From: Octopus bimaculoides
Lineage: Eukaryota
Reading direction: 5' to 3'
Length of the DNA stretch: 63,131 nucleotides
NCBI RefSeq assembly: GCF_001194135.2
Contig: NC_068984.1
Coordinates: 91,935,569-91,998,699 of the forward strand
This document shows positions 4,300 to 25,009 of the stretch, piece after piece (positions within the stretch are counted from its first letter, which is position 1; every line of letters begins with the position of its first letter). Under the pieces are notes generated by a model. That model was given only the letters and a program-made list of their open reading frames with translations. It did not search any database and had not been told where the DNA came from. The translations under genes were made by a program, and so were the position numbers.

Positions 4300-4740
4300 G
4301 TTGTTACATCTTTTGACAGCTGAGAAAAATAAACCATGTTGGAGAAGGATTGTAGTTATTCAAAACTTATTTGAATGCTGAATCAGAAATAAATTAAAAT
4401 ACTTATCGTGGCCTCTGAAAATTCTTGGATTTTCGGAAGCATTTCCTCGTAGGCATGCGCTTCCAGAAAACCCCAGCTTTATCAACATAGAGTACAACAT
4501 GGCACACATTTTTTCTGGCTCGTCAGATTAATTAACAGCAGCCTCTCTATCAGTACAGGCAGCTTCACCGGTCATTTTAAAGCTATACAAAATAAGGTAT
4601 TTCATAAAATTTTGAAACCAGCTTTTACAAACCGAAAAGGTTTTGCGTCAGGAGTTGCACTTTACTGTTTCTGAAAATCGATGCATAAACTTAACCTTCG
4701 TTTCAATGACCATTATGTTTATTGGCACGTGTGCATTAGG
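4300..4740 (-). mobile_element. Tigger/pogo-type transposase remnant
   Basis: Minus-strand pieces KSWFQNF...KMTGEAACTDREAA and YVDKAGVFWKRMPTR match the Tigger motifs KGWF..F, GEAASAD and NVDETGLFWKRMP. Confidence 0.75.
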
Positions 4741-4864
4741 AAAATGTCAAGAAATCTCCCTTAAATTATATCTACTGTTTTAAGTGTGTATGAGTCAAGC
4801 AATAAAGGCCTGTATACGGTAATACTACCAGCTAGAAATCATCTCCAACTCACATGTTACTGTC

Positions 4865-4867
<3 letters not shown>

Positions 4868-4910
<43 letters not shown>

Positions 4911-4912
4911 GA

Positions 4913-4962
<50 letters not shown>

Positions 4963-4967
4963 GACTG

Positions 4968-5051
<84 letters not shown>

Positions 5052-5125
5052 CCTTGTCTGTCTGTCAGTGTGTTTGTTTGTCTGCCTGTCTGTCTATCTG
5101 TCTGTCTATCTGCCTTTCTACCTAT
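4868..5125. repeat. (TATC)n/(TGTC)n microsatellite
   Basis: Directly visible. Confidence 0.95.
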
Positions 5126-5244
5126 CTGTTTGTCAGTTCATTCATCCACCCATCTATCCAAACACACACACATACCTCACGGTCATGACCAGACTAACGG
5201 ATGTTGTTATACAGCGCTGGTCACAATGCACTTCGCATTATTGA

Positions 5245-5410
5245 ACTGAACGCCAGTCGGTCACAGAGTAACCCATTTATAGCTGAGTGGACTGGAGTTA
5301 TGTGAAATGGAGTGCTTTGCTCTAGAACACGACGCACAGCCTGTGTGGGAATTGAAACCACGATCTCGCGATCGTGAGTGGAGCACCATAGCCACTAGGC
5401 CACGCACTTT
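5245..5410 (-). mobile_element. tRNA-derived SINE with CORE-like segment
   Basis: Minus strand has an A-box (TGGCCTAGTGG), a B-box (GGTTTCAATTCC), then gtgttctagagcaaagcactccatttcac. Confidence 0.7.
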
Positions 5411-5485
5411 CATACACGCACACGCACACGCACACGCACACGCCTGCATACATATATACATACATGCACACACGAAGACACACAC

Positions 5486-5562
5486 ACGCATGCATACACA
5501 CGTATGCATACACACGTATGCATACACACGTATGCATACACACGTATGCATACACACGTATG

Positions 5563-5570
<8 letters not shown>
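5486..5570. repeat. 14-bp tandem repeat (CACACGTATGCATA)n within an (AC)n tract
   Basis: About 5 visible units. Confidence 0.85.
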
Positions 5571-5601
<31 letters not shown>

Positions 5602-5733
5602 ACACACACACACACACAATGGTATGCATATATTTCAGTGAAACAAAATATTATTTTAGATCATATTCTGTTTTATCCACGTTCCACAACTACAATAATC
5701 GTATTGTTATGTATCTTTTTCTTTGTATCATAG

Positions 5734-6308
5734 CATGTCAGAGGACCATACCAACGGATGTCATGTTCATGGTCGGTAACCATCAGTTTGGCAGTCACAG
5801 GACTCAAATTATCTTCGAGGGTATAAAAGCGGCGATGAAGAAAGTCAATACTGGAAAAAAGTTTCAATTTGGAACAGTATTTGAAGACTGTCTGCCTAAC
5901 CAGGATGTTAGGATCGGAATAACTGGAGAAAAAGAAATCATTAAGAAAACTACCAACTTCTTACACGGTGATTTTACATCTCTTTTCCGCAAACTGAATT
6001 TTAATAATTTCTTGCCAAAAAGAAACATTTTTATGCGGCATTTCGGAATGGTATTTATCGACCGTACTGTGAATTTGAACAGTCCAAAAATTACACATGA
6101 AATCCAAAGAATTTTGAATGATGTTATACTTTTATTTTATGTTGTAATTGGAGATGGTGTGAATATGTCTAAAATTCCTGGCATATCACCTAAGATGATT
6201 ATCAAAATACCTTCCTATGAAGCCTTAGTTACAACTTTTCCAGTATTGCTTTCAGATACAATATGTAAATCAGCAGAAAACTCAGGTGGCAGACCAGACA
6301 TTTCATAA
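5734..6308 (+). CDS. exon encoding a degenerate MIDAS-less VWA domain of a two-VWA matrix-protein-like gene (paralog 1); upstream exons not found in window
   Basis: Pyrimidine-rich acceptor ...tcatag|CA at 5732-5733 (phase 1), then ~190 open codons: CQRTIPTDVMFMV...FQFGTVFEDC...HFGMVFID...LFYVVIGDGV...IIKIPSYEAL...DTICK, which follows VWA strand order. Clear homology to 24501-25009. Confidence 0.8.
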
Positions 6309-6520
6309 TTTCTTTCTTTTATGTGGAAATACGATTTATGTTTTTTAAAAAATAAACGTAACTTACTGGAAACATTCCAAACACTTATTCAGTGTAAACC
6401 TTTAACAATCATTCACAAAATACAGGCCGTCATATCCTCGAGGACAAAATCTACATAAGTTCACTCATCAATTTATTTAATAAAAAGAGATTTTCTTTGT
6501 GCCTTAATTTTTTCAAACAG

Positions 6521-6552
6521 AATTGCCATTAATGGAAAACCTTCCATGTTGA
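6521..6552 (+). CDS. candidate short terminal exon (ELPLMENLPC*) of paralog 1
   Basis: Good acceptor ttttctttgtgccttaattttttcaaacag; in phase with a weak donor TCAG|gtggca at 6286; AATAAA at 6648-6653. No transcript evidence. Confidence 0.25.
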
Positions 6553-7299
6553 GACCATCAACAACTGAATGATTGATAGTTATATTCAGTATAGAATTAG
6601 AATATTTTGCTTTGATAAAATTGACTTATAGTTATTTATAACTCAGGAATAAAACGTTTATCTTCAGTTTTGAAGTTTTATTAAGATATAATTATTTATC
6701 GTTTACAAATACCAGAAAGTATAGTAGTCTCATTGTTTTTGTTTTCTTTAAAACATTTCTTCAGATTGTTATTATTTGTTATATGTATAAAAGTGTTTTT
6801 CACAAAAATATTTAAAATGTGTTTAATATATCATACGAATTTACTTTTGTCATAATAGAAAATTCAGTTTATCTCTTGCAATAAATATTTATATGTAACA
6901 GTATTTTTGAATATATGAAATTATGTTTACTTATCTAAATTATATTTTTCTTCTAATCTTTCCAGCATCAGATTTTAATTGAATTCGGTATTTACTTGTT
7001 TGGGCGCAATGCTGTATGTTTGTGAATGTGTCTCTATGTATATGTAGTGTGTTGAGACTAACGTCACACAAGCACTATAGCTTATGAAAGAGTAATAAAG
7101 TATCAGAACGTAATATACATATATACTTTACTGGAAAGCAAGTATGTTAGGAATAAAGAAGTTAATCGTAAATATCAACTGTTAGCTCATGCAATCTAAT
7201 ATATATCTATGATATTCAGATATAAGACTCGACTAATTAAGTACCATATGATAATTAGTGCTGCACTTTAGTAAAAATTGATAGATAATGCTGCAGTTT

Positions 7300-8525
7300 A
7301 GTAAGAATTGATATATAATCATTGTAAATGCAATATCTAAACTATTTGTAAAGTTGTTTCAACATTTCATGGTCTCTATATTGACTTGTTAATGGCTGCT
7401 TTTTCGTCTGTTTTCTTAGCAAAAGTTTATAAAATGTTAAAAGATTATCTACTAAATCACGTACTCGAAAAATTTCAGTCAATCAAAATTTTCTATTTTG
7501 TCGGAGAAAGAAAACAAAAACCTAGGAGGGAGATAAATTTAAGGAATTAGAAATTTATTTAACAAAATTTATTTAGAACCTTAGGGAAAAGTTGACATTT
7601 GTGGGCAAAGTAACAATTACGACCATGTTGCGATCCTTTTACACTTCATCATCATTTCATATCACAGTCTACTTAAAATTGCTTTGAAAATTTGTCGAAG
7701 GTTATTTTTTGTGTTAAGCATAGAAACAGAGTTACGAATAAGACTTAATGTTGTCAGTGTTTTGCTTGAAATATTGTTAGTATTTTTGTTTTGTCTTGCA
7801 AAGATACATAAAAAGCTTATGTTGATATAAAATTGTTTTCGTTTGTTTTAATAAGAAAATTATGAAGTTGCATATTGTTGACGGTATGCCACACAATAAA
7901 ATTTGAAGTTAGTGAAGTTATTGATTTTGTTGCTATTTCTGTATGTACGTGGTTTTTAAAAATTTCTTTGATTTCAAATTAAGATATTGTGTTTTTAAGA
8001 TGCCGTTATAAAAGTGTTCTGGGTGTTGCATATGCGATTGATGCTTGGAAGGAATTTTTCTTGTAGTGGTAAGGACTGTGAGAATTAGAACTGAATTTTG
8101 TTGCGCTAAATAAATCTGCCTCTCGCAGATTTGACTGGTCATTCAGTCTTAGTATTTTTGTTTTGTAGTGTAGGTATACTCGTACAAGGGGATTTAATAA
8201 GTTCCTTGTGAATGAAAAGACGTGCATGTTAGGAGATCTCGTGATTTGGTGTACGATTCTTGACAGTTGTTTTCGGTAGGCAAATGATAAATTACAAAAT
8301 TTGACGCTTTTAACCATGTTTAGTATCCCAGATTCAAATTTATCGAGCAAAGGGTTACAAAGAGTTTTATAAGATTTAAGCTTACAAGAGCGACGTTTAT
8401 GTTTGGATACCTCTTTAATGTCGAAGAAGAAAACGTGCAACCTCATTTTTCTTAAGCCATTAGTCTTCTGAAGAAGAGGTAATAGATATGATCCGAGGGG
8501 GAATGGAATATCCTTAAGTGAAATA
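7300..8525 (-). mobile_element. Penelope-like retroelement remnant (N-terminal region clear, RT core decayed)
   Basis: Minus strand SLKDIPFPLGSYLLPLLQKTNGLRKMRLHVFFF...LLDKFESGILNMVKSVKF...NMHVFSFTRNL resembles PLE N-termini (S.KNIPIP...MRWKAFFF...FE.DL..M...I.F...ADKT.N). A possible YRDD relic (QYRDH) lies near 7370. Only 8200-8525 is well supported. Confidence 0.6.
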
Positions 8526-8654
8526 TTAAGGGATTGCCTGTCTATATTGTGTAATGCTTATTATTTGTGTTCTTGAGCATGCATACATACAAACATACAT
8601 ACATGCATACATACATATATACATTCATACATACTAGTTTTAAATGTTGGCACA

Positions 8655-8847
8655 AGGTCAGCAATTTCGGAGCAGGTAAGTCGATTACATCGACAACAGT
8701 GTTCGATTGATATACTTACTTTATCGATCCCGAAAGGATGAAAGGCAGAGTTGACCTTGGAGAAATTTGACCTCAGAACGTAAAGACAGACAAAATGTCG
8801 CTTAGCATTCTGCCCGGCGTGTAAACGATTCTACCAGCTCGACGACT
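8655..8847 (-). mobile_element. tRNA-derived SINE, family A (head GGCGGCGAGCTGGCAGAATCGTTAG)
   Basis: Matches copies at 47270, 54762, 58935, 59425 and 59690; A- and B-box-like motifs on the element strand. Confidence 0.85.
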
Positions 8848-9772
8848 TAATACATTCATACACATTGGTATACAGAAAATATGGATAACTCTAACACTGG
8901 AGAAAGGTTTACTCTTACTTAAGGAAAGCAAAAATATGGGACCACTTTATCTTGAATATTTTGTATGTATGTAAGTAAATCTAGGGCAAGTTGGCAAATT
9001 GGCGGAATCATCAGGACGTTGGTTGAAATCCCTCGCAGCAAGTGCCAACTCTCTGCTCTCTGTGTTCAAATGTGTCGAAGTCAATTTGGTCTTTCATCTA
9101 TTGGTGTTCAATAAAAAGTACCAATCCGGAGTGGTGAATTGTCAGAAGTTAGAACATCAGATGAGATGTCTTGTAGTACCTGTTCCCGTTTATTTCATTC
9201 TGACAACAATAACGCCTGCATCAATACTAGTGCCAAGCTCTATCTGCTCTTATGTGGAGGACCTTCCCTTAGATAACATCGGTAGCGTGAAGAAGGTAGA
9301 TAATACATAGATTATAGGCAGTCTTCCTTTAAACCAAAACCCAGTGCAAACGTTGCAAATATACGGTTAACTCTAATCGGCGCAGACCCCTAAGAAATGG
9401 AAAATGAAAACCTATCACTTTCTTTCAGAGACCTGCAATAATGAGTACAATTTCTACACATCTGCTTCTTATCCACAACTCATATGCATGCAAGATTTTA
9501 TTGATTTCTTGTATTGAGATAGCAGCCAAATCTCTCTTCTATAAGAGAGGTAATATTTATCACCATTTAAACGTGGATGTTCTGTTAGAGCAAACTATAC
9601 CGCGGTAGTTACCATGAGAAACCCTCACATTGGCTTTTGATGCAAAATGCACTCTTTTTTAAATAAACAAAAAATACAACAGCAAATAAAGCAAAAACAA
9701 CAACAACAAAAAACGAGTACATTTTACACCAAATGCCAGTATGAGAGTTTCTCTCATGGTATCTACTGCAGT

Positions 9773-10158
9773 GTGGAGGCGCAATGGCCCAGTGGTTAGG
9801 GCAGCGGACTCGCGGTCATAGGATCCCAGTTTCGACTCCCAGACCGGGCGTTGTGAGTGTTTATTGAGCGAAAACACCAAAAGCTTCATGAGGCTCCGGC
9901 AGGGGATGGTGGCGAATCCTACTGTACTCTTCCATCACACCTTCCTCTCACTCTTACTTCCTGTTTCTGTTGTACCTGTAATTCAAAGGGCCAGCCTTGT
10001 CACAATGTGTCACGCTGAATATCCCCCGAGAACTACGTTAAGGGTACACGTGTCTGTGGCGTGCTCAGCCACTTGCACGTTAATTTCACAAGCAGGCTGT
10101 TTCGTTGATCGGATCAACTGGAACCCTCGACGTCGTAAGCGACGGAGTGCCAACAACA
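9773..10158 (+). mobile_element. full-length tRNA-derived SINE, family B, with 12-bp TSD
   Basis: tRNA-like head GGCCCAGTGGTTAGGGC...GTTTCGACTCCC, (CAA)n tail, TSD ATCTACTGCAGT at 9761-9772 and 10159-10170. Confidence 0.9.
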
Positions 10159-10189
10159 ATCTACTGCAGTCTAATCAGCTGGCAAAAAT

Positions 10190-10360
10190 TAGTAGTACCT
10201 GTATTTCAAGGGACCAACCTTGTCACATTCTGTGTCATGTTGAGAACTACGTTAAGGGTACACGAGTCTGTGGAGTGCTAAGCCACTTGCACGTTAATTT
10301 CACGAGCAGACTGTTACGTTGATCGGATCAACTGGAAACCTCGTCGTCGTAACCGATGGC
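10190..10360 (+). mobile_element. 5'-truncated SINE family B copy
   Basis: Repeats the 3' half of 9773-10158 (gtacctgta-ttcaaagg...gatcggatcaactggaa). Confidence 0.85.
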
Positions 10361-10823
10361 GTATCAGTTTTTCTTTCCACCCCAGGATACTCTGTTCTAA
10401 CAGAATATTTACGTTTAAGTGGGGATAAATATTACCTCTCGGTATTAATACTGCCTCTGTCGCTATAAGAGTTTGGAGTACTGATATATCTTCTATAAGA
10501 GTTATGAGCACAGATAGTACCTTCATTATCATAAGCAACTCGGGCGCACTCGGTAACCATCTTACACAAAAGCATGTTTGTATATATACATTTATAAGTG
10601 TGCGCGTGTGGTGTTTTCAGTTTGAGTGTGAGTGTGTGCGAATGTATACTTGTTTGTCAGTTTGTATGTATGTATGTATGTATGTATGTATGTATGTATG
10701 TATGCATGCATGTAAGCTTTTCATTGGGGTATGTTCTCATAATTCAAGTTAGTCATAATATAGAGACAAGGGTTCTTTGTCCGAATCAAAATTGTTCGAG
10801 AGATGTGAAGATGTGGATGTATG

Positions 10824-10884
<61 letters not shown>

Positions 10885-11484
10885 NNNNNNNNNNNNNNNN
10901 NNNNNNNNNNNNNNNNNNNNNNNNNNNNNNNNNNNNNNNNNNNNNNNNNNNNNNNNNNNNNNNNNNNNNNNNNNNNNNNNNNNNNNNNNNNNNNNNNNNN
11001 NNNNNNNNNNNNNNNNNNNNNNNNNNNNNNNNNNNNNNNNNNNNNNNNNNNNNNNNNNNNNNNNNNNNNNNNNNNNNNNNNNNNNNNNNNNNNNNNNNNN
11101 NNNNNNNNNNNNNNNNNATACATACATACATACACACACATACAAACGGGGAGAGAATTGCAAGTAACTTGTATACATACAAAGGCGTGCAACATTTTGT
11201 AACATATGAGCGTATGTGTGATTATGCGTGCGTGTGCATACAATATATATGCATGAGATTATATGTAAATATTCATTCTAGGAATGTCAAATGACGAAGT
11301 TTGGAATGCTTCAAAATTCCTCACCCTACCACTACTCGGGTGGATTTAGTGAATGCTAGACAATATATTTATTCTTTCTTGTTTGTTTAATGTAAATCTG
11401 TTGTTAGATAGCCCTATGCAACAATCATCATAGGTACAACTGAGAATCCATAGCCAGTATATCCCGTATTATATGACCATAGGT

Positions 11485-11541
11485 GTCTTTCTTTCTGTCT
11501 TTCTTTCTGTCTTTCTTTCTCTCTTTTTCTCTTTCCTTCTC

Positions 11542-11585
<44 letters not shown>

Positions 11586-11705
11586 TCACTCATTCATTCT
11601 TTCTTTCTTTCTTTCTTTCTTTCACTCATTCATTCTTTCTTTCTTTCTTTCTTTCTCTCTTTCTTTCTTTCTTTCTTTCTTTCTCTCTTTCTTTCTTTCT
11701 TTCCT

Positions 11706-11745
<40 letters not shown>

Positions 11746-11810
11746 TTTTCATTCATTCATTGTTTCCTTCTTTCTTTCTTTCCTTCTTTCCTTCTTTGTT
11801 TGTTTGTTTG
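11485..11810. repeat. (TTTC)n pyrimidine-rich microsatellite
   Basis: Directly visible. Confidence 0.95.
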
Positions 11811-11840
11811 TTTCTGCTTCTTCCTTTGATGGCAGTAATA

Positions 11841-11884
<44 letters not shown>

Positions 11885-12325
11885 TGAGGGCTGTCTTTAT
11901 TGACATGTTTTTTCCAGTATCTCTTACTTTTAATGTTGTGGATACATTCTTGCTGTGGTGTGCCGTTTTGTATCATTGTTAGGACAACCATTGTTGACGA
12001 TCTTTGCTGTACGTATGTCTCTTCTGTATTTAATCATTTAAATTCTTCCGCCAAAGAAGGTGCTGATTTCTAACAAAGATGCAAAACTCCATTGTTGGAA
12101 TGCAGATAATGAAAACAACGGTACATTTTAGACCTGAAAAAGTCTTGCGTAGTTTTACTGTTTTGCTTACAGTTTGTATTTGTAATGCGCAAATCAGTTG
12201 GTTGATTTCTTTTTCTGAAAATCCAAGCTTCACTTACAAAATCAAGTGCTCCCATTACTATTAGCATAGATGTAAATTTGTAATCTGGGTATAGAAGCTG
12301 GAGGTTTCGAAGCAGTTGTCCATAA
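11885..12325 (-). mobile_element. R4/Dong-like retrotransposon 3' end
   Basis: NYGQLLRNLQLLYPDYKF...IVMGAL and KLGFSEKEINQLICALQIQTV, homologous to the C-terminus at 30046-30320. Confidence 0.75.
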
Positions 12326-12512
12326 TTATGCATGTATGTATGTATGTATGTATGTATGTATGTATGTATGTATGTATGCATGCATGCATGTATGCATGTA
12401 TGTTTGTGTATATGTATGCATGAAAGTATGTATTTACCACTCTGTTTCTCTATCTCTCTTTCGTTATGTATATAAATATGTATAATTATAAATATGTATA
12501 TGCGTGTTTGTA

Positions 12513-13462
12513 TCAGGTCATCCCATAAACAATGTCCAAAATATATATGTAATTTCTATCAAATTTTTACAGTATTCTATATATAATGTCGAATGGTATT
12601 GATTGATGCTCATATAAATTTGGAAACATTTAACGTTACATAATTTCTTTAAAGAAGTTGCAGCAGATGGTTTGCAAAGTTGCCCTCTTCAACAGCCTGG
12701 AACGTTGCCCAAACTCGGAAAATGGGCTCTCCTTGATTTGACAGAAGCCAACTGAAAATCACGAGTGGATATCTGTTCATCTCTTCACTCTCGTAAACGT
12801 ATCTCTCCATTTTTGGACAGATTAGTGACTGGTGATGAAAAATGGATTTTTTATGAAGATGTCAAGTGATGTGGAGAACAGGTTAAACCACAACCCAAAA
12901 AGACTTCCATGTAAAAAAGGAGGTTCATTCTGTTTGTGGGGAATTGTATTAGAGTCATCCACTTTGAGCTGCTACCAACTAATGTAACAATTACTGCTCA
13001 CACCTATTATCAACAACTGGAATATTTGGATGCTGCTTTGAAGAAAAAAGACCTGCTTCGGCGGATCATAAGGGAGTGGTGTTTCATCATAATGATACAA
13101 GGCACCACACTGCAAAGACTGCATCAGTAAAAAATCGAAGAACTTGGCTAGGAAAAAATCCCTCCTCCGCTTTATTCTCCGAACTTCGTTCCTTCTGACT
13201 ATCATTTGTTTTGAAGCTCACAGAATCATTTAAGTGGTTTAGTACTCAAAAGCCCCAAAGAAATCGAAACTGATTTCTCTTCCCTCTTCTCATCAAAACC
13301 AAAAGAGTTTTCACCAGTGGAATTAAAAACCTGATGAGTAGACGGAAAGAAGTCCTCGAAAATGATGGAAATTATATACAGGATTAAATTTCGATAAAAT
13401 GTAAAATTAGATCAGTTTTTTTTCTTACTCAAAATTCGGATGTTGCTTATGGGATGACTTGA
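12513..13462 (+). mobile_element. mariner (DD34D) element, internally deleted and inactive
   Basis: TIRs TCAGGTCATCCCATAA / TTATGGGATGACTTGA with TA flanks; remnants FLDRLVTGDEKWIFYED, HFELLPTNVTITAHTYYQQL and YSPNFVPSDYHLF with stops. Confidence 0.9.
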
Positions 13463-13504
13463 TATATATAGATATGTGTGCGCGTACATATATCTTTTAG
13501 CTAT

Positions 13505-13635
13505 TAGTTTTTCAGCCATTGGAATGCGGCCATGCTAAAACACCGCCATGAAGTATTAAGCCGAACAAGTCGACCTCAGAACTTATTTTATTGAAGCATG
13601 GTACTTATTTCATCGGTCTCTTTTCCGAACAGCTA
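13505..13635 (-). mobile_element. SINE 3' portion cut by an assembly gap
   Basis: Similar to 20-200. Confidence 0.55.
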
Positions 13636-14929
13636 NNNNNNNNNNNNNNNNNNNNNNNNNNNNNNNNNNNNNNNNNNNNNNNNNNNNNNNNNNNNNNNNN
13701 NNNNNNNNNNNNNNNNNNNNNNNNNNNNNNNNNNNNNNNNNNNNNNNNNNNNNNNNNNNNNNNNNNNNNNNNNNNNNNNNNNNNNNNNNNNNNNNNNNNN
13801 NNNNNNNNNNNNNNNNNNNNNNNNNNNNNNNNNNNNNNNNNNNNNNNNNNNNNNNNNNNNNNNNNNNNNNNNNNNNNNNNNNNNNNNNNNNNNNNNNNNN
13901 NNNNNNNNNNNNNNNNNNNNNNNNNNNNNNNNNNNNNNNNNNNNNNNNNNNNNNNNNNNNNNNNNNNNNNNNNNNNNNNNNNNNNNNNNNNNNNNNNNNN
14001 NNNNNNNNNNNNNNNNNNNNNNNNNNNNNNNNNNNNNNNNNNNNNNNNNNNNNNNNNNNNNNNNNNNNNNNNNNNNNNNNNNNNNNNNNNNNNNNNNNNN
14101 NNNNNNNNNNNNNNNNNNNNNNNNNNNNNNNNNNNNNNNNNNNNNNNNNNNNNNNNNNNNNNNNNNNNNNNNNNNNNNNNNNNNNNNNNNNNNNNNNNNN
14201 NNNNNNNNNNNNNNNNNNNNNNNNNNNNNNNNNNNNNNNNNNNNNNNNNNNNNNNNNNNNNNNNNNNNNNNNNNNNNNNNNNNNNNNNNNNNNNNNNNNN
14301 NNNNNNNNNNNNNNNNNNNNNNNNNNNNNNNNNNNNNNNNNNNNNNNNNNNNNNNNNNNNNNNNNNNNNNNNNNNNNNNNNNNNNNNNNNNNNNNNNNNN
14401 NNNNNNNNNNNNNNNNNNNNNNNNNNNNNNNNNNNNNNNNNNNNNNNNNNNNNNNNNNNNNNNNNNNNNNNNNNNNNNNNNNNNNNNNNNNNNNNNNNNN
14501 NNNNNNNNNNNNNNNNNNNNNNNNNNNNNNNNNNNNNNNNNNNNNNNNNNNNNNNNNNNNNNNNNNNNNNNNAGAGAAAAAAATTGTAGTTTAGAATCAG
14601 TAGTTCTTTGACTGCTATTTCTAAATTCTCAGTATGTTGGAGAAGCAACTCATGCTAATCCCTGTATTTTATGAGTATATATATATATATATATATATAT
14701 GTAAATAATTAGAAAATGGAGAAAAACATAGATTAACCAGCACATCGATTGGACCCCATTTTAAAGCTTCTTTATTGATACAATGCAAGACATAACAAAG
14801 CTCTGCACACCATTGCCCGGGGTTAACACAGATAACGGATACTGATAGTATATACGGATATTTTATCCCTTAGTCGGTTACTACAACTGTTAACTCTACT
14901 TACACACACACACACACACACATTTATGG

Positions 14930-15090
14930 AGGGTCTCTGTTCGGTTTCTGTGTATCAATTCTACACACAAGGCTTTGGTTGGCCTGGGACTACAACAGAA
15001 GACACTTGCTCAAGGTGCCACGCAGTGGACTGAACTTGGAACTATATGATTGGGAAGCAAGCTTCTTGCTGCATAGCCATGACTGCGCCT
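14930..15090 (-). mobile_element. tRNA-derived CORE-type SINE, family C
   Basis: Reverse complement matches 45783-45940 (ggcaccttgagcaagtgtcttct...ccaaagccttg). Confidence 0.8.
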
Positions 15091-15101
15091 AAAATATGAG
15101 C

Positions 15102-15169
15102 CTCCCGGGTGGGGAGTCACACTCCAGTATCCTGCGTGACAGTCAGGGATACTTACCACTACGCTACCA

Positions 15170-15170
<1 letters not shown>
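15102..15170 (-). pseudogene. tRNA-Asp(GTC)-derived sequence (pseudo-tRNA or SINE head)
   Basis: Minus strand GGTAGCGTAGTGGTAAGTATCCCTGACTGTCACGCAGGATACTGGAGTGTGACTCCCCACCCGGGAG aligns to the eukaryotic tRNA-Asp consensus. Anticodon loop CTGTCAC kept; T-loop and 5' acceptor strand degraded. Confidence 0.7.
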
Positions 15171-15217
<47 letters not shown>

Positions 15218-15961
15218 TTCTTCATAGAATCAGGTACTTAAAAGAATATGCACCAGGTAGGGTTGGATAAAACTGTGGTCACACAGAGAAAACCACCCGT
15301 ACGGGTGTTAAGCGCCTAGGGTAGCAAAGCCGTATTCCAGCAGCAGATACGGGTGCAAACTGTGCAGCATGGAGCGGCATGAAATATTAAAGCAACTCAA
15401 TAGTGGAAAATCTAATCAATAATAAACTGAACCTTCCTCTTTCGTGTATCTACAAGCTATCCCGTACTTTCAAATCCTTTAAGGACATTACATAGTCTCT
15501 ATTCTAGGTCTTAGCCCGCGGCAAAACAACCTCAGTCCCACCACCTGTCTCTTATTGATCTACTTAATCGTCTGAGTTATCTTTTCCTTTTTTCTTTCTT
15601 TTTTTTTCTTTTTTCTATACATCCTATCACTTTTAACTTTTAAAACTTGTTAACATTACTTGAATAGTATGTGATTTAGAATGGTATGCGATATTGAAGG
15701 AACTATTCTTCTATATAGTTTTACCTAGTATTACGCATTTGCGATTTACTGTATCTAACCCATAAAACAGCAGCTCACACGCCTTAGCAAGTCTCTTCCC
15801 TATTCGACTAAATAAGTAATCCTCATACCAAGTAACTGTTATTTGTGTGGCACACGATAATGAAGGTACATATCCAAACTACTTACCCATGACTATCGGT
15901 CATAATTCATTATTTGGCATTTTCTCAGCACAATTATTAGCAAATAAAACAGGTATTGTGT

Positions 15962-16002
<41 letters not shown>

Positions 16003-16750
16003 NNNNNNNNNNNNNNNNNNNNNNNNNNNNNNNNNNNNNNNNNNNNNNNNNNNNNNNNNNNNNNNNNNNNNNNNNNNNNNNNNNNNNNNNNNNNNNNNNN
16101 NNACGCACACGCGGGCACACGTACACACACTCACGCACACGCACACACATATTTATAAGAGAATAAAACATGAACAGGAAGTCTTTGATAGCATATTTAT
16201 ACAAAAGTGAGAGAGCAAAAATATATATCAATATAGAAGAAAACCAAGGAAATCCGGAGTGCGAAAGGTTATAGTAATTCGGCATAGACATGTACAAATC
16301 AAGTAAAATCATCCAATAATGTTATTGATAATATAGAAGTGAACTCGAAGGACTTTCCGAATTCTCTTGTATCTCATTAACGACATTTTGTATGATGTTC
16401 TTGGATTTGTACCCATCTAGCCTGAATCACTATAGACTCTCACTCCACCGGATTTTCCTGATTTCCTGTTGTATGTATATATATTTTGCTTTCTGATGTC
16501 TTGCATCTTATAAACGACATTTTCAAGTCTTGCAACTGCCTGTTAATTTTTTATTCTATCAACATCAACTCGGTCGCTACATTGCCTATAGACAATATTC
16601 ATTTTTACGGATCCTCTATCCCTGCGTTTAACGTCGGAGTGTAATTATTTGGTAGGGTCTTCTTTGGCATTTTTCACCTATTACTTATATATATCTACTA
16701 CAAAAATGAGAATTTATGTGGTTATGGATGTGAGTCTAAAGATTTAACCA

Positions 16751-16827
<77 letters not shown>

Positions 16828-16829
<2 letters not shown>

Positions 16830-18072
16830 TAGTTTTATTTTTATAACGTGCTTTCACTTCACTACCGAGCGCAGCTCTGTGCGCCTTGGGTATGTGCTGT
16901 GGTTTGCTGTGGTGCTCTTATGTTTACTGTATTGAAAGTGTTTTGCGTAGAATGTGTGCAGTACCCAGTAGTGCAATTTTCTGTATGTTATATATATTTG
17001 TAAGTCCTGGTGTTTTTGTTATGTATTTGTCTGAATATTTTTTTATTATACCTAAGGCACCTACNNNNNNNNNNNNNNNNNNNNNNNNNNNNNNNNNNNN
17101 NNNNNNNNNNNNNNNNNNNNNNNNNNNNNNNNNNNNNNNNNNNNNNNNNNNNNNNNNNNNNNNNNNNNNNNNNNNNNNNNNNNNNNNNNNNNNNNNNNNN
17201 NNNNNNNNNNNNNNNNNNNNNNNNNNNNNNNNNNNNNNNNNNNNNNNNNNNNNNNNNNNNNNNNNNNNNNNNNNNNNNNNNNNNNNNNNNNNNNNNNNNN
17301 NNNNNNNNNNNNNNNNNNNNNNNNNNNNNNNNNNNNNNNNNNNNNNNNNNNNNNNNNNNNNNNNNNNNNNNNNNNNNNNNNNNNNNNNNNNNNNNNNNNN
17401 NNNNNNNNNNNNNNNNNNNNNNNNNNNNNNNNNNNNNNNNNNNNNNNNNNNNNNNNNNNNNNNNNNNNNNNNNNNNNNNNNNNNNNNNNNNNNNNNNNNN
17501 NNNNNNNNNNNNNNNNNNNNNNNNNNNNNNNNNNNNNNNNNNNNNNNNNNNNNNNNNNNNNNNNNNNNNNNNNNNNNNNNNNNNNNNNNNNNNNNNNNNN
17601 NNNNNNNNNNNNNNNNNNNNNNNNNNNNNNNNNNNNNNNNNNNNNNNNNNNNNNNNNNNNNNNNNNNNNNNNNNNNNNNNNNNNNNNNNNNNNNNNNNNN
17701 NNNNNNNNNNNNNNNNNNNNNNNNNNNNNNNNNNNNNNNNNNNNNNNNNNNNNNNNNNNNNNNNNNNNNNNNNNNNNNNNNNNNNNNNNNNNNNNNNNNN
17801 NNNNNNNNNNNNNNNNNNNNNTGTTGTTTCTTCTTCTTCTTCTTCGTATTTGTTAGGTAGATTGATTTCTTGTTTGTATTTGTCAGCTTCCTTAAATACT
17901 GAAAACAGTTTTTTGTTTTGCTCGTGTTTTGTGGCTATTTGTATTAGTTTCCCTTGCTTCTGGAGTAGGTATTTTTGCAGTCCTATGGTGGTTATTTTAT
18001 AATAGTTTTCTAGCTGTATAAGACCCCTGCCACCTTCTGTGCGTTGTATATATAGCCTTTCTATGTCTTTCT
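16828..18072 (-). mobile_element. 5'-truncated R4/Dong-like element spanning a gap, (AAT)n tail
   Basis: DIERLYIQRTEGGRGLIQLE right of the gap; GALGIIKK...IQKIALLGTAHILRKTLSIQ* plus 3' UTR left of the gap; tail at 16757-16827. Confidence 0.8.
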
Positions 18073-18081
18073 ATGCCTTTC

Positions 18082-18135
<54 letters not shown>

Positions 18136-18136
<1 letters not shown>

Positions 18137-20120
18137 TATGGTTTCCTTTCATTATAACTTTATTTCAGCTGCTTAGTACCAGGCATCCTCCAGAGGCCAA
18201 AAGTAGCAAGGGCACTTTTGTTTTACTATGCATGCTAAAATTATCACTACATTTATTCCATTTCAGATGGAGAGCGCTTTCCGTAGTATATGGGATGTAC
18301 CCATCAAGGTTATCTTTTGTAGTTCACCGAGATTAGAGTTACCAGGGAATTGCTTAATATACTTCTCAGTTCACTTCTTTATCATTCTCAGCGCATCAAT
18401 TACTACTGGTATTATCGTAGTACTAAGCTTCCACATTTTTGTGATTTCAATTTGCATATCTTTGTAGTGAGAAAGCTTTTCGTATTCCTTTCTTGAGACA
18501 TTTTGATCTTGTGGGACAGACATATCTATTCACTGGTTAGTTCCTCTGTTATAGTCCTTGATCACAATATCTGATCGACTGAAGTCAATTTTTCTGTCTG
18601 TTTGTATTGAGAAGTTCCAAAGGACGGTGACGCCCTCGCTATTTATTACATCCTCTGGGGTTTAATTATGTAGTATTTACAAGCATTCCAGTGGATGTAC
18701 TGCCATAGTCTGTTATGTCTTATGAAGTACTACTTTTCAGCGAAGACTGGGCAGCCAGAAACATGATCAATTGTCTGTGTAAATTTTCCGCAAATTCTGT
18801 ACGAGGGATCAGATCCATCTTTAAGGACGTTTGCATGGAAGTTTCTGGTAGGTAAGCTCTGATCTTGCGCTGCAATAACAAAACCTTCAGCTTCCCCTTT
18901 CAGACCTGTCCCTTGTAGCCATTGGTGTGTTAAATTTTGATCAATATCCGGATTGGACAGGAAGTTCGGATATTTTCCATGCAGGAGTTTGCCTTTCCAG
19001 TTGTCTTCGATATTATTCATGCAAGCCTTCTTTGCTTTTTGTTTGATGTTTTTTTGCATCAATGATAGGTTTGTCACTATTTGGATCTCGTTGGCCTTTC
19101 TGATCGTAATATCTAAATCAGGAGAAGCAACGGTATGTCTGTCAGTATTTGGGTGTCTTTGATCATTCTTATTGTTAACTTGTAGGCCAAGAAACTTTTT
19201 AAATTTCTTACTAAGCTTCATGACTGAAGCTTGTTTGGAATCTTCATGCTTCAGTGCAGTTCGTAAGAGCACATCACGTTTCAAGGTCTATTATTGCTGA
19301 TTTGAAGGATTGTTCGAGCTGTATCAGGCCTCTTTCAACTATTTTTCGTGTGAGATAAATCCTGTGTACATCTGATTTTGGATGGTGCATTTTACGGACC
19401 TTTCTATCCATACCCTGCATGTCAGTGAGACTCCACTTAATGATACTGAGGCTATATGTGGTTACTGGTTTGGCCAAAAAATTGATCGCATTAATTCTGT
19501 TAGCAGCATTTAATTCTGAATTTAGGCCCATTCCTACCCTTGGGGATTTTCTCATTCTAGAGTGCTGGATACCGCCACCTTCATTGGTTCCCAGATATTT
19601 GTATACTTCAGACTGGTCTAGGTTTCGAATAGCTGTGGTAGTATCAAGATCTATGTTTTCTACCCTAATGAACTTCCCTGCCTTGAAAGTAGTCTTTGCA
19701 CATTTATCATGTCCGAATTCCATACCTATATCAGAGCTGAATTCTTTGACGATATTCAGGAGCTCTTCTAATTCTTTGTTGTTTTTGGCAAACAGTTTTA
19801 GATCATCCATATAGAGTAGATGATTAATTTTCTGGTTAAAGATCTTATACCCTCTCTAAGCATTATTCAGTTGCATAGATAAGGGGATCAGAGCGAGGCA
19901 GCATAGTAATGGTGATAATGAGTCACCTTGAAAATACCACAGGCGATATTGATGTCTAGTGAGGTGGTATATCTTTGTGTATGGCTTAAAATGAGGGTGG
20001 TTCTCCACGAATTTATGATTACTTTTAAAAAGTTCACAATTGTTGGAGCTATCTTGTAAATTTCCAGGACTTTGATGATCCATGCATAGGGGACACTGTC
20101 AAAAGCCTTCTTCTAATCTA
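18136..20120 (-). mobile_element. R4/Dong-like element (RT, CCHC and RLE region), disrupted
   Basis: FQGDSLSPLLCCLALIPLS, YMDDLKLFAK, YKYLG, RICGKFTQTIDHVSGCP and ELQKITLMGTSHILRKALSI*; (AAT)n tail at 18083-18135. Confidence 0.9.
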
Positions 20121-20403
20121 TCCAAACGTGAATTATCCAAACACCAAAGAATTCCGCTCAACGTATGGCTATGATGCTCCCCCACTACTTGTGCTCGTGA
20201 TCAGAGATGCACATATCGGCAGCGACTCATAGACATACTCAACTGGTTAAGGTTAAGCAACTGACAAACAAATCTGTGGTATTGAGAAGAATATTTGCTG
20301 TAGCCCATCTTTTATACCAAGACAAAACAATGTACATAATAACACTTCCAATCAATTAAGGTCAAAAGCCACGAGAGCCATTGCCTGGCACTGCGTTAGG
20401 GCA

Positions 20404-20405
<2 letters not shown>
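20120..20405 (+). mobile_element. non-coding interspersed repeat, 3' half, ending in a (TAT)n tract
   Basis: Shares ccaaacgtgaattatccaaac.ccaaagaattcc.ctca.cgtatggctat with the reverse complement of 51275-51550. Confidence 0.7.
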
Positions 20406-20477
<72 letters not shown>

Positions 20478-20499
20478 TATTATTATAATTATTATTATA

Positions 20500-20558
<59 letters not shown>

Positions 20559-20565
20559 AATTATC

Positions 20566-20609
<44 letters not shown>

Positions 20610-20849
20610 AATTATTNNNNNNNNNNNNNNNNNNNNNNNNNNNNNNNNNNNNNNNNNNNNNNNNNNNNNNNNNNNNNNNNNNNNNNNNNNNNNNNNNNNN
20701 NNNNNNNNNNNNNNNNNNNNNNNNNNNNNNNNNNNNNNNNNNNNNNNNNNNNNNNNNNNNNNNNNNNNNNNNNNNNNNNNNNNNNNNNNNNNNNNNNNNN
20801 NNNNNNNNNNNNNNNNNNNNNNNNNNNNNNNNNNNNNNNNNNNNNNGTG

Positions 20850-23150
20850 GTACAAACCTTTTTTGTTTTCAAATTTCTTCGAAAAAAGTAAGCATTGAAA
20901 GTGGCGACGAAAAGCGGGAGTGAGGAAAGAAGGTGGTACGGTACTAGACAGCAGGAAGAAAAGAAAGAAAGAAAGAAAGAAAGAATGAAAGAAAGAAGAA
21001 GAAGAAGAAGAAGAAGAAGAAGAAGAAGAAGAATCTAACAAAAATGGAATTAGCGGCAGGAAAGAGATTTTTGGAAATATCACTGCAGCTAAGGAATTGG
21101 TTAACATCACATTGGAGAACAAAATAGAAAAACTAAACAAGGTAGCAAAATATATGAAAATTAATGGATGGAGGGCAGAATTGACACTTCCAAGCGATGT
21201 GCTTGAAGCAACAGCCAAACGAACAGTTGTCTACAGGTGAGTGAACACTAAGATAAGGAAATTCGAAAATTCTAAACGCGAACAGGTGGAAAAAGCCTTG
21301 AAAGATATATAACAGGATATCCACCACATTGCAGAAGCGAGACATTATGGCAGAGTAGAGGTCCTTTTTAAGACCGAGGTGCAGGCGATACAGAGCTCGG
21401 TGATCACGCGTGGCACCGCGGAAATCGCTCTCTTCCCAACGTACATAGGAAGAAGGGCAGTACAAATTACGATATCTGGTGTCCCGCCAGGCTTGGATTT
21501 ATGATGGATTCTCGCTTGTATTTGTATGGAAGGACCGGGGAAGAATCTTCTTGATGACAAAAGATCGAGGTGGGAGAATTGGGTTGAGATTACCTTGGAG
21601 GCTCTTCTCCACGTGAAGCCAGACCAGTTAGAGAAAGTCCCTCTCGATTTCCCTCTCGAATGGAGTAGAACTAAAGGTGAATGTGGAGGGCAGAAGGCCG
21701 AGGTGCCACGATTGTGGTTCAACGGACCACTTACGGTTATTCTGCCCACAAAACCAGAAAGAAGGGCAGAAAGAAATGTTCAAACGAAATTACCACAACC
21801 CATGAATCGACAAAAACAACAAGAACAACAACAGCAACAACAAAAACAACAACAAGAGAACCAGAACAAACAACACCAGAAAAAACATACTAGACACGGA
21901 CCCCTCCACGTATCCAAGTGATGATCAGAGGGAATCCTAGAAGGCCAGAAAACCAAGAAAGAGACACAGAAAAAAGGGAGAAATCCAAGAAACGATAAAC
22001 AGAGACACACTGATGACAACACCAACACCATCACAAACATCCACAACAGAATCAAAAATACAACAAACTTTAAAAAGAAAAATGTCACTACAACAACAAC
22101 CATCCACGCAGCAGCGGAATTTTGTGCTAGTGAGGATGGCCAATGAAAAGAGGATGGCTCTCATAGCACAAAACAAGAACATTGGGACAAAGCGGGTGAT
22201 CTGCAGCCCCAACACTTTTAGAGAATCGGAGAGCCTAATGATGGTGTGAATGACAGACTTATGTGAGCATTAAGCGGAGCTACCCCGTATGACATTGGAT
22301 CTCACAGGGTATTGGCCTGCAGATGGCTTTTTCGGGGGTTTCCAGAGGAATNNNNNNNNNNNNNNNNNNNNNNNNNNNNNNNNNNNNNNNNNNNNNNNNN
22401 NNNNNNNNNNNNNNNNNNNNNNNNNNNNNNNNNNNNNNNNNNNNNNNNNNNNNNNNNNNNNNNNNNNNNNNNNNNNNNNNNNNNNNNNNNNNNNNNNNNN
22501 NNNNNNNNNNNNNNNNNNNNNNNNNNNNNNNNNNNNNNNNNNNNNNNNNNNNNNNNNNNNNNNNNNNNNNNNNNNNNNNNNNNNNNNNNNNNNNNNNNNN
22601 NNNNNNNNNNNNNNNNNNNNNNNNNNNNNNNNNNNNNNNNNNNNNNNNNNNNNNNNNNNNNNNNNNNNNNNNNNNNNNNNNNNNNNNNNNNNNATACGGT
22701 CGGTCTTCCTGGACCCGGAAAGTAAGTCGGTGGACGTGGACGTGAAAGATAACGTCGGAGTCCATTGTGAAGACCGTCTTGCCTCCTTCCTTTGGCCGGG
22801 AATGGAGAGTAATTTTTCTCTGTCAGATAGCTATGGCAAAAGAGTTTGTGTGGTTGGCGCAATTGAAAGGGTTAAAGACGGGTCCCTTCCACTTTGACCA
22901 AGCCTCATTGACTTTTTCAGGTTCCATCTGAAAAGGAAAGTGAGGCTGGAGAAGGAGGTACTGTCACCCGGTAAGTTCGTTGAAAGGTGAGTGAATATGG
23001 CAAAAATGGTCCGCGTGAATGGACCTACTCTAGGTGTGCGCCTGTAGGCTGGATAGAAGGGAGCGACATAAAAGCAGCGACATAAAGGCAAAAGCAGATA
23101 CGAAGGAGGAAATAACCAGAAACAAGTAGGGACCGAGGACGACGATACTA
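20850..23150 (+). mobile_element. L1/Tx1-like non-LTR remnant (ORF1 with CCHC knuckle, ORF2 fragments), contains a gap
   Basis: ORF1 remnant ...HYGRVEVLF...PTYIGRRAVQITISGVPP... then VEGRRPRCHDCGSTDHLRLFCP (CX2CX4HX4C, ~21672-21750). APE-like SVFLDPE and ORF2 C-terminus-like FFRFHLKRKVRLEKEVLS follow the gap. Confidence 0.7.
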
Positions 23151-23319
23151 TGAGCTAGAAAATTAGAAAAACATGCATATGCCTGAATATGTACTTAAGT
23201 ATATGCTTGCATGTATGTTATTTGTGCGTGTGCGTGCTTGTGTGTATGCTTTTACACGTCTGTATTTACATATATATCTGCATGTATATATAAATATGCA
23301 CATGTGCACATATGTACGG

Positions 23320-23896
23320 TGTAAGAATAAAATTACTGGTATTTTGTTTCTTTTGGCCACATCTTCGAGCATTTTAAAGAACGAATTGAATTTCGAAAGC
23401 AGTTAAACGTTGTTGAAAATATCGTACGTAGTTCGTAGCTGTATCTCTACTTAAACACAAATATAAACCTGTTTGTTGTGATAGTAACAACAAAACGGAA
23501 CTTATTAGATGGATTGCAAAGCATCTAACATATAGGTGGTGGTACTAGAACTGGTAATACATTATAAGAATGCAAGGTATGATTTTTTTAATCAAATGTA
23601 GACTACATCAAGACTTAAAGTTGACCGTGTTGTTGTTGCGTTTACTGATGGTCACTCGAGTAATGAGGAAATAATGAAGAAGGAAGCAAAGTCTCTAAAA
23701 AATTCCGGAGTGAAAATATTTATAGTTGGTGTCAGTCCTGCTCTTAAAAGTGAAATGTTACAAGATATTTCGAGTGAACCACACGAAGAATTTGCCCACA
23801 GCTTCGCAAGTTTTGACGTTCTCCTTGCTAAATATGGACTCTTCACTTGTAAGACCTGTAGAAGAGTTCAAGAAGAAACCACTTTTACAATACAAG
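23320..23896 (+). pseudogene. VWA domain 1 exon of pseudogenised paralog 2
   Basis: Frameshifted pieces CKNKITGILFLLATSSSI, FRKQLNVVENIV, LDGLQSI*HIGGGTRTGNTL*, and DRVVVAFTDGHSSNEEIMKKEAKSLKNSGVKIFIVGV...FASFDVL...CKTC. Phase-1 donor CAAG|gtaaag at 23897. Confidence 0.9.
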
Positions 23897-24299
23897 GTAA
23901 AGTTTTCTTGTTATTTGCTAAAAAATAACTCATTCTTCTTTTGTGCAAACTATTTTATAACTATTGTTGATGAGGAGATATTTATGAATGCTATAAATGT
24001 TAATTCTGTGGAAACTAGATGGATAAGATCGGCTATACCACCTTTCTCAACAAAATTAGCTTCATCTCTATATAGATACCCAAGGCAGCCAAAATGACAC
24101 TTTTAACTAAGATTTCCAATAACTGTTTTATGATCTTTGTGTAATTATTAATTTAAAAGGTAGTTTTTTAAAAATTGATTATACACTTAAAAGTTCAGCA
24201 TTCTCCCCAATAATTGCTTTTTCTTTGATTTCCATTTTCTTCTTTTTTGCATTATGTATTATCCCCCACCGCTTGAAAACCGGTGCTGGTTTGTTTTCT

Positions 24300-24410
24300 T
24301 TCCTGTAACTTAGCAGATCAGAAATAAAACCGATAGAATAGGTATCAGACTTAAGTAGTGGGTCCCCAGCATAGCTGCAGTTCAATGACTGAAACAAGTA
24401 AAAACTAAAG
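24300..24410 (+). mobile_element. SINE 3' fragment in the pseudogene intron
   Basis: ccgatagaatag...ccagcatagctgcagttcaatgactgaaacaagtaaaa, same family as 20-200. Confidence 0.7.
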
Positions 24411-24500
24411 GATTACTTATCCAATCAAATTCTGGTAAGGTTATAGTAAATAAATCTACCGATCGTCTAACTGCACTATTGCATTTTTTATTGTTTCCAG

Positions 24501-25009
24501 GCTGCAGAAATGCTTCTTCAACAGATATTTTATTCACAACTCGGATATAATAAAACTAAAACAATACAGGACGGTGTGGAAGAAAGTCTTACGTCTTACA
24601 GAATTTGACACTCGTCACAATATAAGCTTCGGGATCTTATTAAAGGATTGCTTTCAAAGTTTGGGTATTTCGGTGGGATCAATTAAGGACAGTGAAGAAT
24701 TCATAAAGAAAGCCAAGGCCTCGGCTCGCTACTAAGTCAAATAAGTTTAGATAAATTTATATCGAACAGTCATAGATTTCCTCAAAAATTTGTGATTAAA
24801 GAAGCAACCTGAATAATCAACAGCTTCGGCAAGAAATTAAAAGCCTTTCCAATGAAAATATCGATGTAGTTGCAGTACTCATTGAAAGAACTGTAAATAC
24901 GAATGCTTTAACTTCCTTAGCAATTTCCCCAAAATACATACTGAGCATTCTCTCTTACAAAACATTTTCTTCGTCGTTAGCAGAATTATTTTATAGCAAA
25001 GTTTGTTAG
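24501..25009 (+). pseudogene. degenerate VWA domain 2 exon of paralog 2
   Basis: Acceptor ttgtttccag|GC (phase 1). GCRNASSTDILF, QLGYNKTKTIQDGV, ISFGILLKDCF and LNNQQLRQEIKSLSNENIDVVAVLIERTVN...ISPKYILSILSYKTF...KVC* align motif by motif with 5734-6308, with frameshifts and stops. Confidence 0.88.

Follow-up and report, generated by a model that had tools for sequence, protein, structure and literature searches.

A stretch of 63,131 nucleotides from Octopus bimaculoides (NC_068984.1 of assembly GCF_001194135.2, positions 91,935,569 to 91,998,699; hereafter the window, which lies at ~91.94-92.00 Mb on CM046604.1) holds two related segments on the same strand, an open exon at 5734-6308 (copy 1) and a disrupted homolog at 23320-25009 (copy 2). 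An initial annotation read them as tandem genes for matrix proteins with two VWA (von Willebrand factor type A) domains each, one gene apparently intact and one pseudogenized, hidden among transposable elements and part of a fast-turnover, possibly poorly annotated cluster. This raises the questions of which gene each copy belongs to, whether the open exon encodes a VWA domain at all, and how old the pairing is. Taking the evidence as a whole, we consider it very likely that copy 1 is the last exon of LOC106875254, the gene of a secreted protein with three VWA-type domains, that copy 2 is an unprocessed pseudogene of the same family, and that the two belong to an old cluster.

The open exon belongs, as the last one, to LOC106875254, a gene of O. 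bimaculoides that is already annotated. Its translation of 190 residues is 100% identical to the C terminus of XP_052823210.1 (P0003; 615 aa), given as residues 425-615. RefSeq describes the gene as "uncharacterized protein LOC106875254" and gives it two isoforms, X1 (XP_014778808.1, 729 aa) and X2 (XP_052823210.1), and UniProt holds X1 as A0A0L8GS37, "VWFA domain-containing protein." The expectation of poor annotation therefore did not hold, since the gene was already in both databases and only its third domain had been missed. We mapped X1 onto the surrounding locus (L003; CM046604.1 of GCA_001194135.2, 91,894,826-91,951,876), which is 100% identical to window positions 1-16308, gaps included, and in which position 40744 corresponds to window position 1, directly after a gap of 3199 N (L003 37545-40743). 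LOC106875254 comprises at least six coding blocks across 37 kb, and the window contains only its last exon and 5.7 kb of its last intron:

L003 10001-10051: signal-peptide exon of LOC106875254
L003 ~15514-15657 and 19565-20008: two exons encoding the first domain, VWA1
L003 30727-31107: Thr/Ser-rich repeat (linker) exon
L003 36614-37211: single exon encoding the second domain, VWA2, in phase 1 at both ends
Window 1-5733, forward strand: 3' portion of the last intron (L003 37211 is the last position of the VWA2 exon, and the 3199-N gap begins at 37545)
Window 1415-1622: gap of 208 N inside that last intron
Window 5734-6308, forward strand: terminal coding exon in phase 1, encoding 190 aa and a TAA stop; a third VWA-type domain (VWA3) without a metal-ion-dependent adhesion site (MIDAS)
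Window 6351-6356, forward strand: candidate polyadenylation signal AATAAA, read from the sequence, 43 nt past the stop

The exon is open, as the initial annotation had it, and has the form expected of a phase-1 terminal exon: an acceptor AG at 5732-5733 precedes it, position 5734 begins the two bases that complete a split codon, and an open frame runs from 5736 to 6305 (CQRTIPTDVMF...GGRPDIS) to the TAA at 6306-6308. The contig of an octopod ortholog (L001) likewise has AATAAA after its stop. The claim that the list of open reading frames (ORFs) shows almost nothing of this locus was incorrect for copy 1, which is present within ORF 5307-6308. The last intron measures ~9.3 kb as written, with the two gaps of 3199 and 208 N inside it. 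From its N to its C terminus, the protein is laid out as a signal peptide, VWA1, a Thr/Ser-rich, mucin-like linker of ~110 aa, VWA2, and VWA3, so that the product of LOC106875254 is, as judged from its sequence, a secreted protein with three VWA-type domains. The two-VWA architecture first proposed thus has to give way to one of three VWA-type domains plus a Thr/Ser-rich linker.

The linker (residues ~222-335 of P0026) consists of near-perfect (T)TAST(T)/TPSTT repeats and looks mucin-like and O-glycosylatable. Its length varies strongly among species; it is Thr-rich in the Sepia relative and almost absent from the Argonauta ortholog. Within the last intron, a compound microsatellite of (GTATGCATACACAC)n followed by (AC)n occupies window positions ~5330-5620, ~110 bp upstream of the copy 1 acceptor, and an AC-rich tract lies at the equivalent place in the other octopod's contig (L001 1-30).

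That octopod contig, a genomic sequence from the Logan collection (L001; run SRR11869391), also allowed us to examine selection on the exon. It aligns to window positions 5588-6758 at 82% identity and shares both the upstream microsatellite and the acceptor, cag followed by CATGTCAG. Identity is 88.7% in the exon compared with 82-85% in the flanks, and the 575-bp exon carries one indel (3 nt, in frame) versus 11 in ~600 bp of flank. The ratio of nonsynonymous to synonymous substitution rates (dN/dS) against this one octopod ortholog is 0.37, with a significant excess of synonymous changes (Fisher p=3e-4). Given that the exon is more conserved than its flanks, that its single indel preserves the frame, and that dN/dS is 0.37, these results indicate that the copy 1 reading frame is held open by purifying selection.

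We then asked whether the domain encoded by this exon is a VWA domain. An exhaustive HMMER search of 1.84 billion cluster representatives recovered 23 relatives of the exon at E<=1e-3, with P0003 ranking first; in word-indexed protein searches, the exon matched one Logan ortholog and the family profile matched two proteins. We aligned 17 homologous C-terminal domains (alignment A2), 12 of which match PF00092 by themselves (best E=2e-21). The relatives from Haliotis and Potamilus and the relative P0024 carry a partial MIDAS (DSAxxG) and match the Pfam VWA family directly (E=7e-20). When the A2 profile was searched against all sequences of the PDB with hmmsearch, the top matches were VWA proteins only, namely, PTMP1 (4cn8, E=4e-10), the C-terminal VWA domain of collagen VI alpha2 (whole domain, 7e-8), VWF A2, and the integrin alphaX I-domain. 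Profile-profile comparison with hhalign placed A2 with the family's own VWA2 (98.3%, E=1.5e-14) and VWA1 (98.8%, E=1.4e-16) over 175-181 columns.

Structure prediction pointed in the same direction. With the 17 sequences of A2 as input, AlphaFold2 returned a predicted model whose alternating strands and helices follow the beta-alpha-beta order known from VWA domains (predicted local distance difference test [pLDDT] of 80.9, predicted template modeling score of 0.80). A Foldseek search of the PDB with this model yielded VWA or I-domains for all of the top 50 matches, at template modeling (TM) scores of 0.58-0.70, led by VWF A3 (1fe8, TM 0.68) and with PTMP1 second (4cn9, TM 0.64). The exon therefore encodes, as judged by the predicted model and by profile comparison, a strongly diverged VWA domain that keeps the alpha/beta fold. 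Alternatively, the domain could be unrelated to VWA and its motif resemblance superficial, a reading that draws on an exon with neither a Pfam match of its own nor a DxSxS MIDAS motif. We regard this as very improbable, because the profile-profile probability of 98% extends over the full domain length, the PDB profile matches and the Foldseek matches are all VWA, and the Haliotis, Potamilus, and P0024 relatives hit Pfam VWA without any intermediary. The VWA identity claimed for 5734-6308 thus fails when the single sequence is put to Pfam and stands when the family profile, hhalign, and AlphaFold2 with Foldseek are used. Since a Pfam search with the full LOC106875254 protein likewise reports VWA1 and VWA2 and misses the third domain, a cryptic third VWA domain goes unnoticed by Pfam-based annotation in LOC106875254 and its relatives.

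In the third domain, residues G14-N15-H16-Q17-F18 align to the D-S-S-x-S of VWA1 and VWA2, and because they replace it, the MIDAS site, which VWA domains typically have but do not require, is gone in VWA3; the Asp of strand D (D109) alone is conserved. In the family, the motif FMVSNNxFGxxKT stands in for the DxSxS metal-ion site. Seven positions are invariant in A2 (G19, T23, G46, C52, D109, G139, and C177), and nearly all members have the first Cys. In the octopus VWA3, this Cys and C177 probably form a disulfide, as the analogy with VWF A1 and A3 suggests.

Having placed copy 1, we turned to the second copy, of which three parts can be delimited:

23320-23896, forward strand: VWA2-type exon remnant, delimited by frameshift-aware alignments to five family proteins
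23897-24500, forward strand: intron of 604 bp, GT-AG, phase 1, at the conserved VWA2/VWA3 junction
24501-25009, forward strand: VWA3-type terminal exon remnant with at least three frameshifts, ending in TAG at 25007-25009

The initial annotation had aligned 5734-6308 and 24501-25009 motif by motif, and every motif pair that it listed is present, spread over three frames. The resemblance goes beyond chance by several measures. Within the window, copy 2 and copy 1 match by tblastn with a sum E of 3e-6, and the family VWA3 hidden Markov model (HMM) matches fragments of copy 2 at E=5e-11 and 6e-6. A frameshift-aware alignment of the two copies scores 109, whereas 30 shuffled sequences average 32.6 and reach 45 at most. 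For the VWA2-type exon, the family HMM gives E=4e-28 on copy 2. This exon starts at ~23320, where CKNKITGILFLLATSSSI corresponds to CKNKVADIWFLLDSSSSI in the copy 1 gene.

Copy 2 is heavily damaged. The 5' half of its VWA2-type exon contains ~4 frameshifts (~23374-23389, 23430-23433, 23510-23534, and 23565) and a TAG at 23599-23601; the VWA core has lost ~10 residues, Ala replaces the MIDAS Asp, and no AG acceptor is present at the position homologous to the start of the parental VWA2 exon. Its 3' half, 23602-23896, is open and makes a good C-terminal half of a VWA domain (Pfam VWA E=1e-12, 23602-23898). The "canonical VWA exon" reported upstream in copy 2 thus holds for the 3' half (23602-23896) and not for the frameshifted, TAG-containing 5' half (23320-23601). 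In the VWA3-type exon, alignments to eight relatives mostly need 2-4 frameshifts, recurring at ~24585-24627, 24694-24718, and 24798-24810 and, in some cases, at 24536-24555 as well, and all of the alignments end at the conserved Cys before the TAG. Counted over ~1.1 kb, the damage to copy 2 comes to no fewer than 7 frameshifts plus an internal stop.

It is conceivable that copy 2 is functional and that its frameshifts are errors of a gap-rich draft assembly. The many N gaps speak for such errors, as does the 108-codon stretch 23602-23925, which is still open and scores as VWA. Assembly error would nevertheless have to account for all of the frameshifts and the stop, for the loss of ~10 core residues and of the MIDAS Asp, and for a homologous acceptor position without AG, whereas the same assembly gives copy 1 without a flaw and in full identity with RefSeq; in addition, a word-indexed protein search with the VWA segment of copy 2 matched the window's own ORF only. 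We therefore judge a functional copy 2 highly unlikely. The gaps themselves can be placed precisely. The window contains 13 N runs, and those between the start of copy 1 and the end of copy 2 are as follows:

10885-11117, 13636-14572, 16003-16102, 17065-17821, 20617-20846, and 22352-22693: runs of N, read from the sequence

All six are confined to the inter-copy interval (10885-22693) and interrupt neither 5734-6308 nor 23320-25009; the closest ends 627 bp upstream of copy 2. Because the N runs fall between the copies, the reading frames of both are independent of the gaps, and for the same reason the 17-kb spacing between the copies is only an estimate. The unread sequence between the copies amounts to ~2.6 kb, leaving room for further exons.

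How copy 2 arose is indicated by its intron, which is exactly as first described: 604 bp at 23897-24500, with GT at 23897-23898 and AG at 24499-24500, preceding a Cys codon. Its junction and phase are the same as in LOC106875254, and a single intron also separates VWA2 from VWA3 in XP_014771109.1 (~1 kb) and in the Argonauta protein GAB1606721 (~1.2 kb). Because copy 2 retains this GT-AG phase-1 intron, it is an unprocessed copy and not a retrocopy. Its position amid retrotransposon fragments and its lack of 5' exons would fit a processed, retrotransposed pseudogene, but the intron kept at the family's conserved phase-1 junction refutes that origin, to which we assign next to no probability. 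Searches of the window with tblastn and of six-frame fragments with three family HMMs found no VWA1, linker, or signal-peptide exon for copy 2 and no third copy. A weak match at 20201-20356 (E=0.04) was considered as an extra family exon and dismissed as chance; it adjoins transposable-element sequence. Copy 2 thus reads as an old, unprocessed (DNA-duplicated) pseudogene fragment that is apparently truncated at its 5' end or has its 5' exons in the gaps. In its intron-exon structure, its same-strand family neighbor, and its frameshifts and stop, it resembles other unprocessed pseudogenes of tandem families, and it has nothing unusual among unprocessed pseudogenes generally, except that it is too old for its parent paralog to be identified.

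Several results bear on that age. In copy 2, the VWA segment that is still open falls into the VWA2 clade, at 33-44% identity versus 20-28% to VWA1, and in a neighbor-joining tree, it is not sister to the VWA2 of LOC106875254, which pairs instead with its Argonauta ortholog. The VWA3 of copy 2 is 19-32% identical to every relative and sits on a long branch in neighbor-joining trees, where it is not assignable to a parent paralog. Given that copy 2 is not sister to copy 1, it would predate the split between Octopus and Argonauta. The duplication behind copy 2 is thus, on these comparisons and on an identity of 27-44% between copy 2 and all relatives, an old one, in line with the initial annotation, which had taken the low identity between the copies as a sign of age.

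The family extends beyond the window. O. bimaculoides has a third paralog on the same strand, XP_014771109.1 ("collagen alpha-6(VI) chain"), at 92,260,047-92,282,613, ~261 kb past the end of the window; its exon plan is the same (examined in CM046604.1:92,250,047-92,292,613; L004). The paralogs that the initial annotation anticipated along the scaffold therefore exist, though the window itself holds two loci only. In Argonauta hians, the ortholog GAB1606721 has an intact same-strand paralog, GAB1606720, 12 kb downstream, and a further family member, GAB1606718, is on the same contig. Outside the cephalopods, Haliotis rubra and Potamilus streckersoni have two-VWA proteins whose second domains are the VWA3 relatives. 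The locus belongs to a tandem cluster, old and loose, that Argonauta shares, and the tandem arrangement predates the Octopus-Argonauta split. What the initial annotation proposed about the pair itself therefore stands: one VWA family in same-strand tandem, with one member intact under purifying selection and one pseudogenized. Fast turnover does not, since the paralogs are ancient and the tandem arrangement is older than that split.

The Argonauta neighbor raises the potential that copy 2 is the decayed ortholog of GAB1606720, a case of lineage-specific gene death instead of a duplicate that was dead on arrival. This would refine the explanation given above and does not compete with it. Copy 2 and GAB1606720 agree in relative position, strand, and spacing (12 kb in Argonauta and ~17 kb in Octopus), and copy 2, not being sister to copy 1, predates the split of the two lineages. 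However, GAB1606720 consists of a signal peptide, VWA1, and VWA3 with no VWA2, while copy 2 retains VWA2 and VWA3 with no visible VWA1; their VWA3 identity is ~26%, and the trees do not pair them. We therefore treat a decayed ortholog as a possibility, and a rather doubtful one. In the Argonauta ortholog, the VWA2-VWA3 intron also contains a 34-codon piece (L006 20558-20656) that is 88% identical to the ortholog's own VWA2 residues 387-420 and represents a small internal duplicate of exon sequence.

Against the explanation that copy 1 ends a three-VWA secreted protein gene and copy 2 is an unprocessed pseudogene of its family, a number of points have to be weighed. Pfam found no family at E<=10 for the 190-aa exon alone, so the VWA assignment of the exon relies on transitive profile and fold evidence, and AlphaFold was uninformative with a 2-sequence alignment (pLDDT 36). 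The signal peptide of LOC106875254 is an N-terminal hydrophobic leader recognized by eye. That exon 5 joins exon 6 is taken from the RefSeq model and the orthologs and not from contiguous sequence, as the intron between them is gapped. The missing 5' exons of copy 2 could sit in the 2.6 kb of gaps. Finally, we found no mention in the literature of the LOC106875254 gene or protein accessions or of the Sequence Read Archive runs.

What might the intact protein do? Given its leader, its Thr/Ser-rich linker, its two MIDAS-bearing VWA domains and MIDAS-less third, and its nearest structural relatives, the protein probably acts as a scaffold in extracellular matrix, mucus, or adhesive secretions, by analogy with PTMP1, collagen VI, matrilins, and VWF A1/A3. 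VWA1 and VWA2 would bind partners through a metal-dependent MIDAS, and VWA3 could serve as a metal-independent protein-binding module, for instance a collagen-binding one, as the likeness to VWF A3 and PTMP1 suggests. Family members are transcribed: P0010 is an uninterrupted, intron-free ORF of 646 aa on a 2.3-kb Logan contig. The skin mucus of O. vulgaris is enriched in type-A VWF domains (PMC10138644), and the supplements of that study do not list LOC106875254 accessions.

The comparison with PTMP1 (proximal thread matrix protein 1) of the Mytilus galloprovincialis byssus (PDB 4cn8, 4cn9, and 4cnb), which the initial annotation had drawn, proved apt. PTMP1 is likewise a secreted molluscan tandem-VWA protein, and it is both the best sequence match to the VWA3 family profile among solved structures and the second-best fold match. 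The two nevertheless differ. PTMP1 lacks a mucin-like linker and has exactly two VWA domains in tandem, an architecture that LOC106875254 does not share, with its three VWA-type domains and Thr/Ser-rich linker; sequence identity is ~15%; and the MIDAS of PTMP1 is occupied (according to the title of 4cn9), whereas the octopus VWA3 has none. A second comparison is suggested by NCBI's names for members of the family: collagen alpha-5/6(VI) chain-like, cartilage matrix protein-like, and COL22A. The C-terminal VWA of collagen VI alpha2 aligns to the VWA3 profile over the full domain, but the octopus family has none of the triple-helix repeats, EGF domains, or coiled coils of collagen VI and matrilins (Pfam reports VWA families only), and these names reflect VWA similarity only. 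The third comparison is with VWF itself. The A1 and A3 domains of VWF have a terminal disulfide and bind their ligands without a metal ion. VWF A3 is the best fold match of VWA3, and the octopus family has cysteines at both ends (C1 and C177). Sequence identity to VWF A1 and A3 is, however, ~10-14%, the octopus disulfide is itself a prediction, and the octopus VWA3 family has an extra invariant Cys52.

A more general reading, which we offer tentatively and think improbable on balance, is that the C-terminal domain represents a mollusc-restricted, MIDAS-less VWA subfamily unrecognized by current domain libraries, which could have a distinct kind of binding, independent of metal and particular to the matrix, mucus, or adhesive secretions of cephalopods. 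Its cephalopod members share the signature FMVSNNxFGxxKT ... FGxxFxxC ... FxD ... SYxxL ... C, it counts no more than the 23 representatives at E<=1e-3 noted above, and the subfamily is always the last domain in secreted proteins of 2 to 4 VWA domains. If this reading were true, gene births and deaths in the cluster could track lineage-specific secretions, with an intact neighbor in Argonauta and a dead one in Octopus. The locus is an ordinary gene-family locus and has no bearing on any open question. The gains are mainly in annotation, namely, a cryptic third VWA domain, an unannotated pseudogene fragment, and an old tandem cluster common to Octopus and Argonauta, in a family whose kin include two-VWA proteins of abalone and freshwater mussel and, at a greater distance, the byssal PTMP1. 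Researchers studying cephalopod matrix, adhesive, or mucus proteins gain a defined family and a domain model for proteome searches.

The surroundings of the two copies are AT-rich (36% GC in the window) and, as the initial annotation had noted, contain transposable elements. One of these lies between the copies:

18730-19810, reverse strand: reverse-transcriptase fragment of a non-long-terminal-repeat retrotransposon (Pfam RVT_1 E=8e-6, ORF 19274-19810)

A second reverse-transcriptase-like ORF at 61301-61879 (within 60614-61879, forward strand) has an FMDD motif and is 32% identical to the RVT_1 fragment, and an ORF at 29472-30041 (forward strand) has a weak zf-RVT match. Two adjacent segments in direct orientation, 29661-30525 and 30559-31405 (~850-900 bp), are 70% identical and overlap the zf-RVT ORF; they represent either a tandem duplication inside a transposable element or two nested copies. 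Five other long ORFs, in the 44852-45514, 59005-59493, and 60614-61879 regions, had no Pfam match at E<=0.01, among them the 220-aa ORF 44852-45514 (forward strand).

Two families of interspersed repeats recur across the window, one at 8628-8849, 47253-47474, 54763-54974, 58949-59120, 59432-59611, and 59696-59896 and the other at 9969-10148, 10192-10362, and 55225-55403. Members of both are 170-220 bp long and 73-85% identical, with some local tandem arrays near 59 kb, and they look like short interspersed nuclear elements; ARAGORN found no tRNA-derived elements and no tRNA-like part in these repeats. Finally, a 207-bp element at 58707-58913 is 94.7% identical to L003 5468-5672, upstream of LOC106875254, and is a young interspersed repeat.

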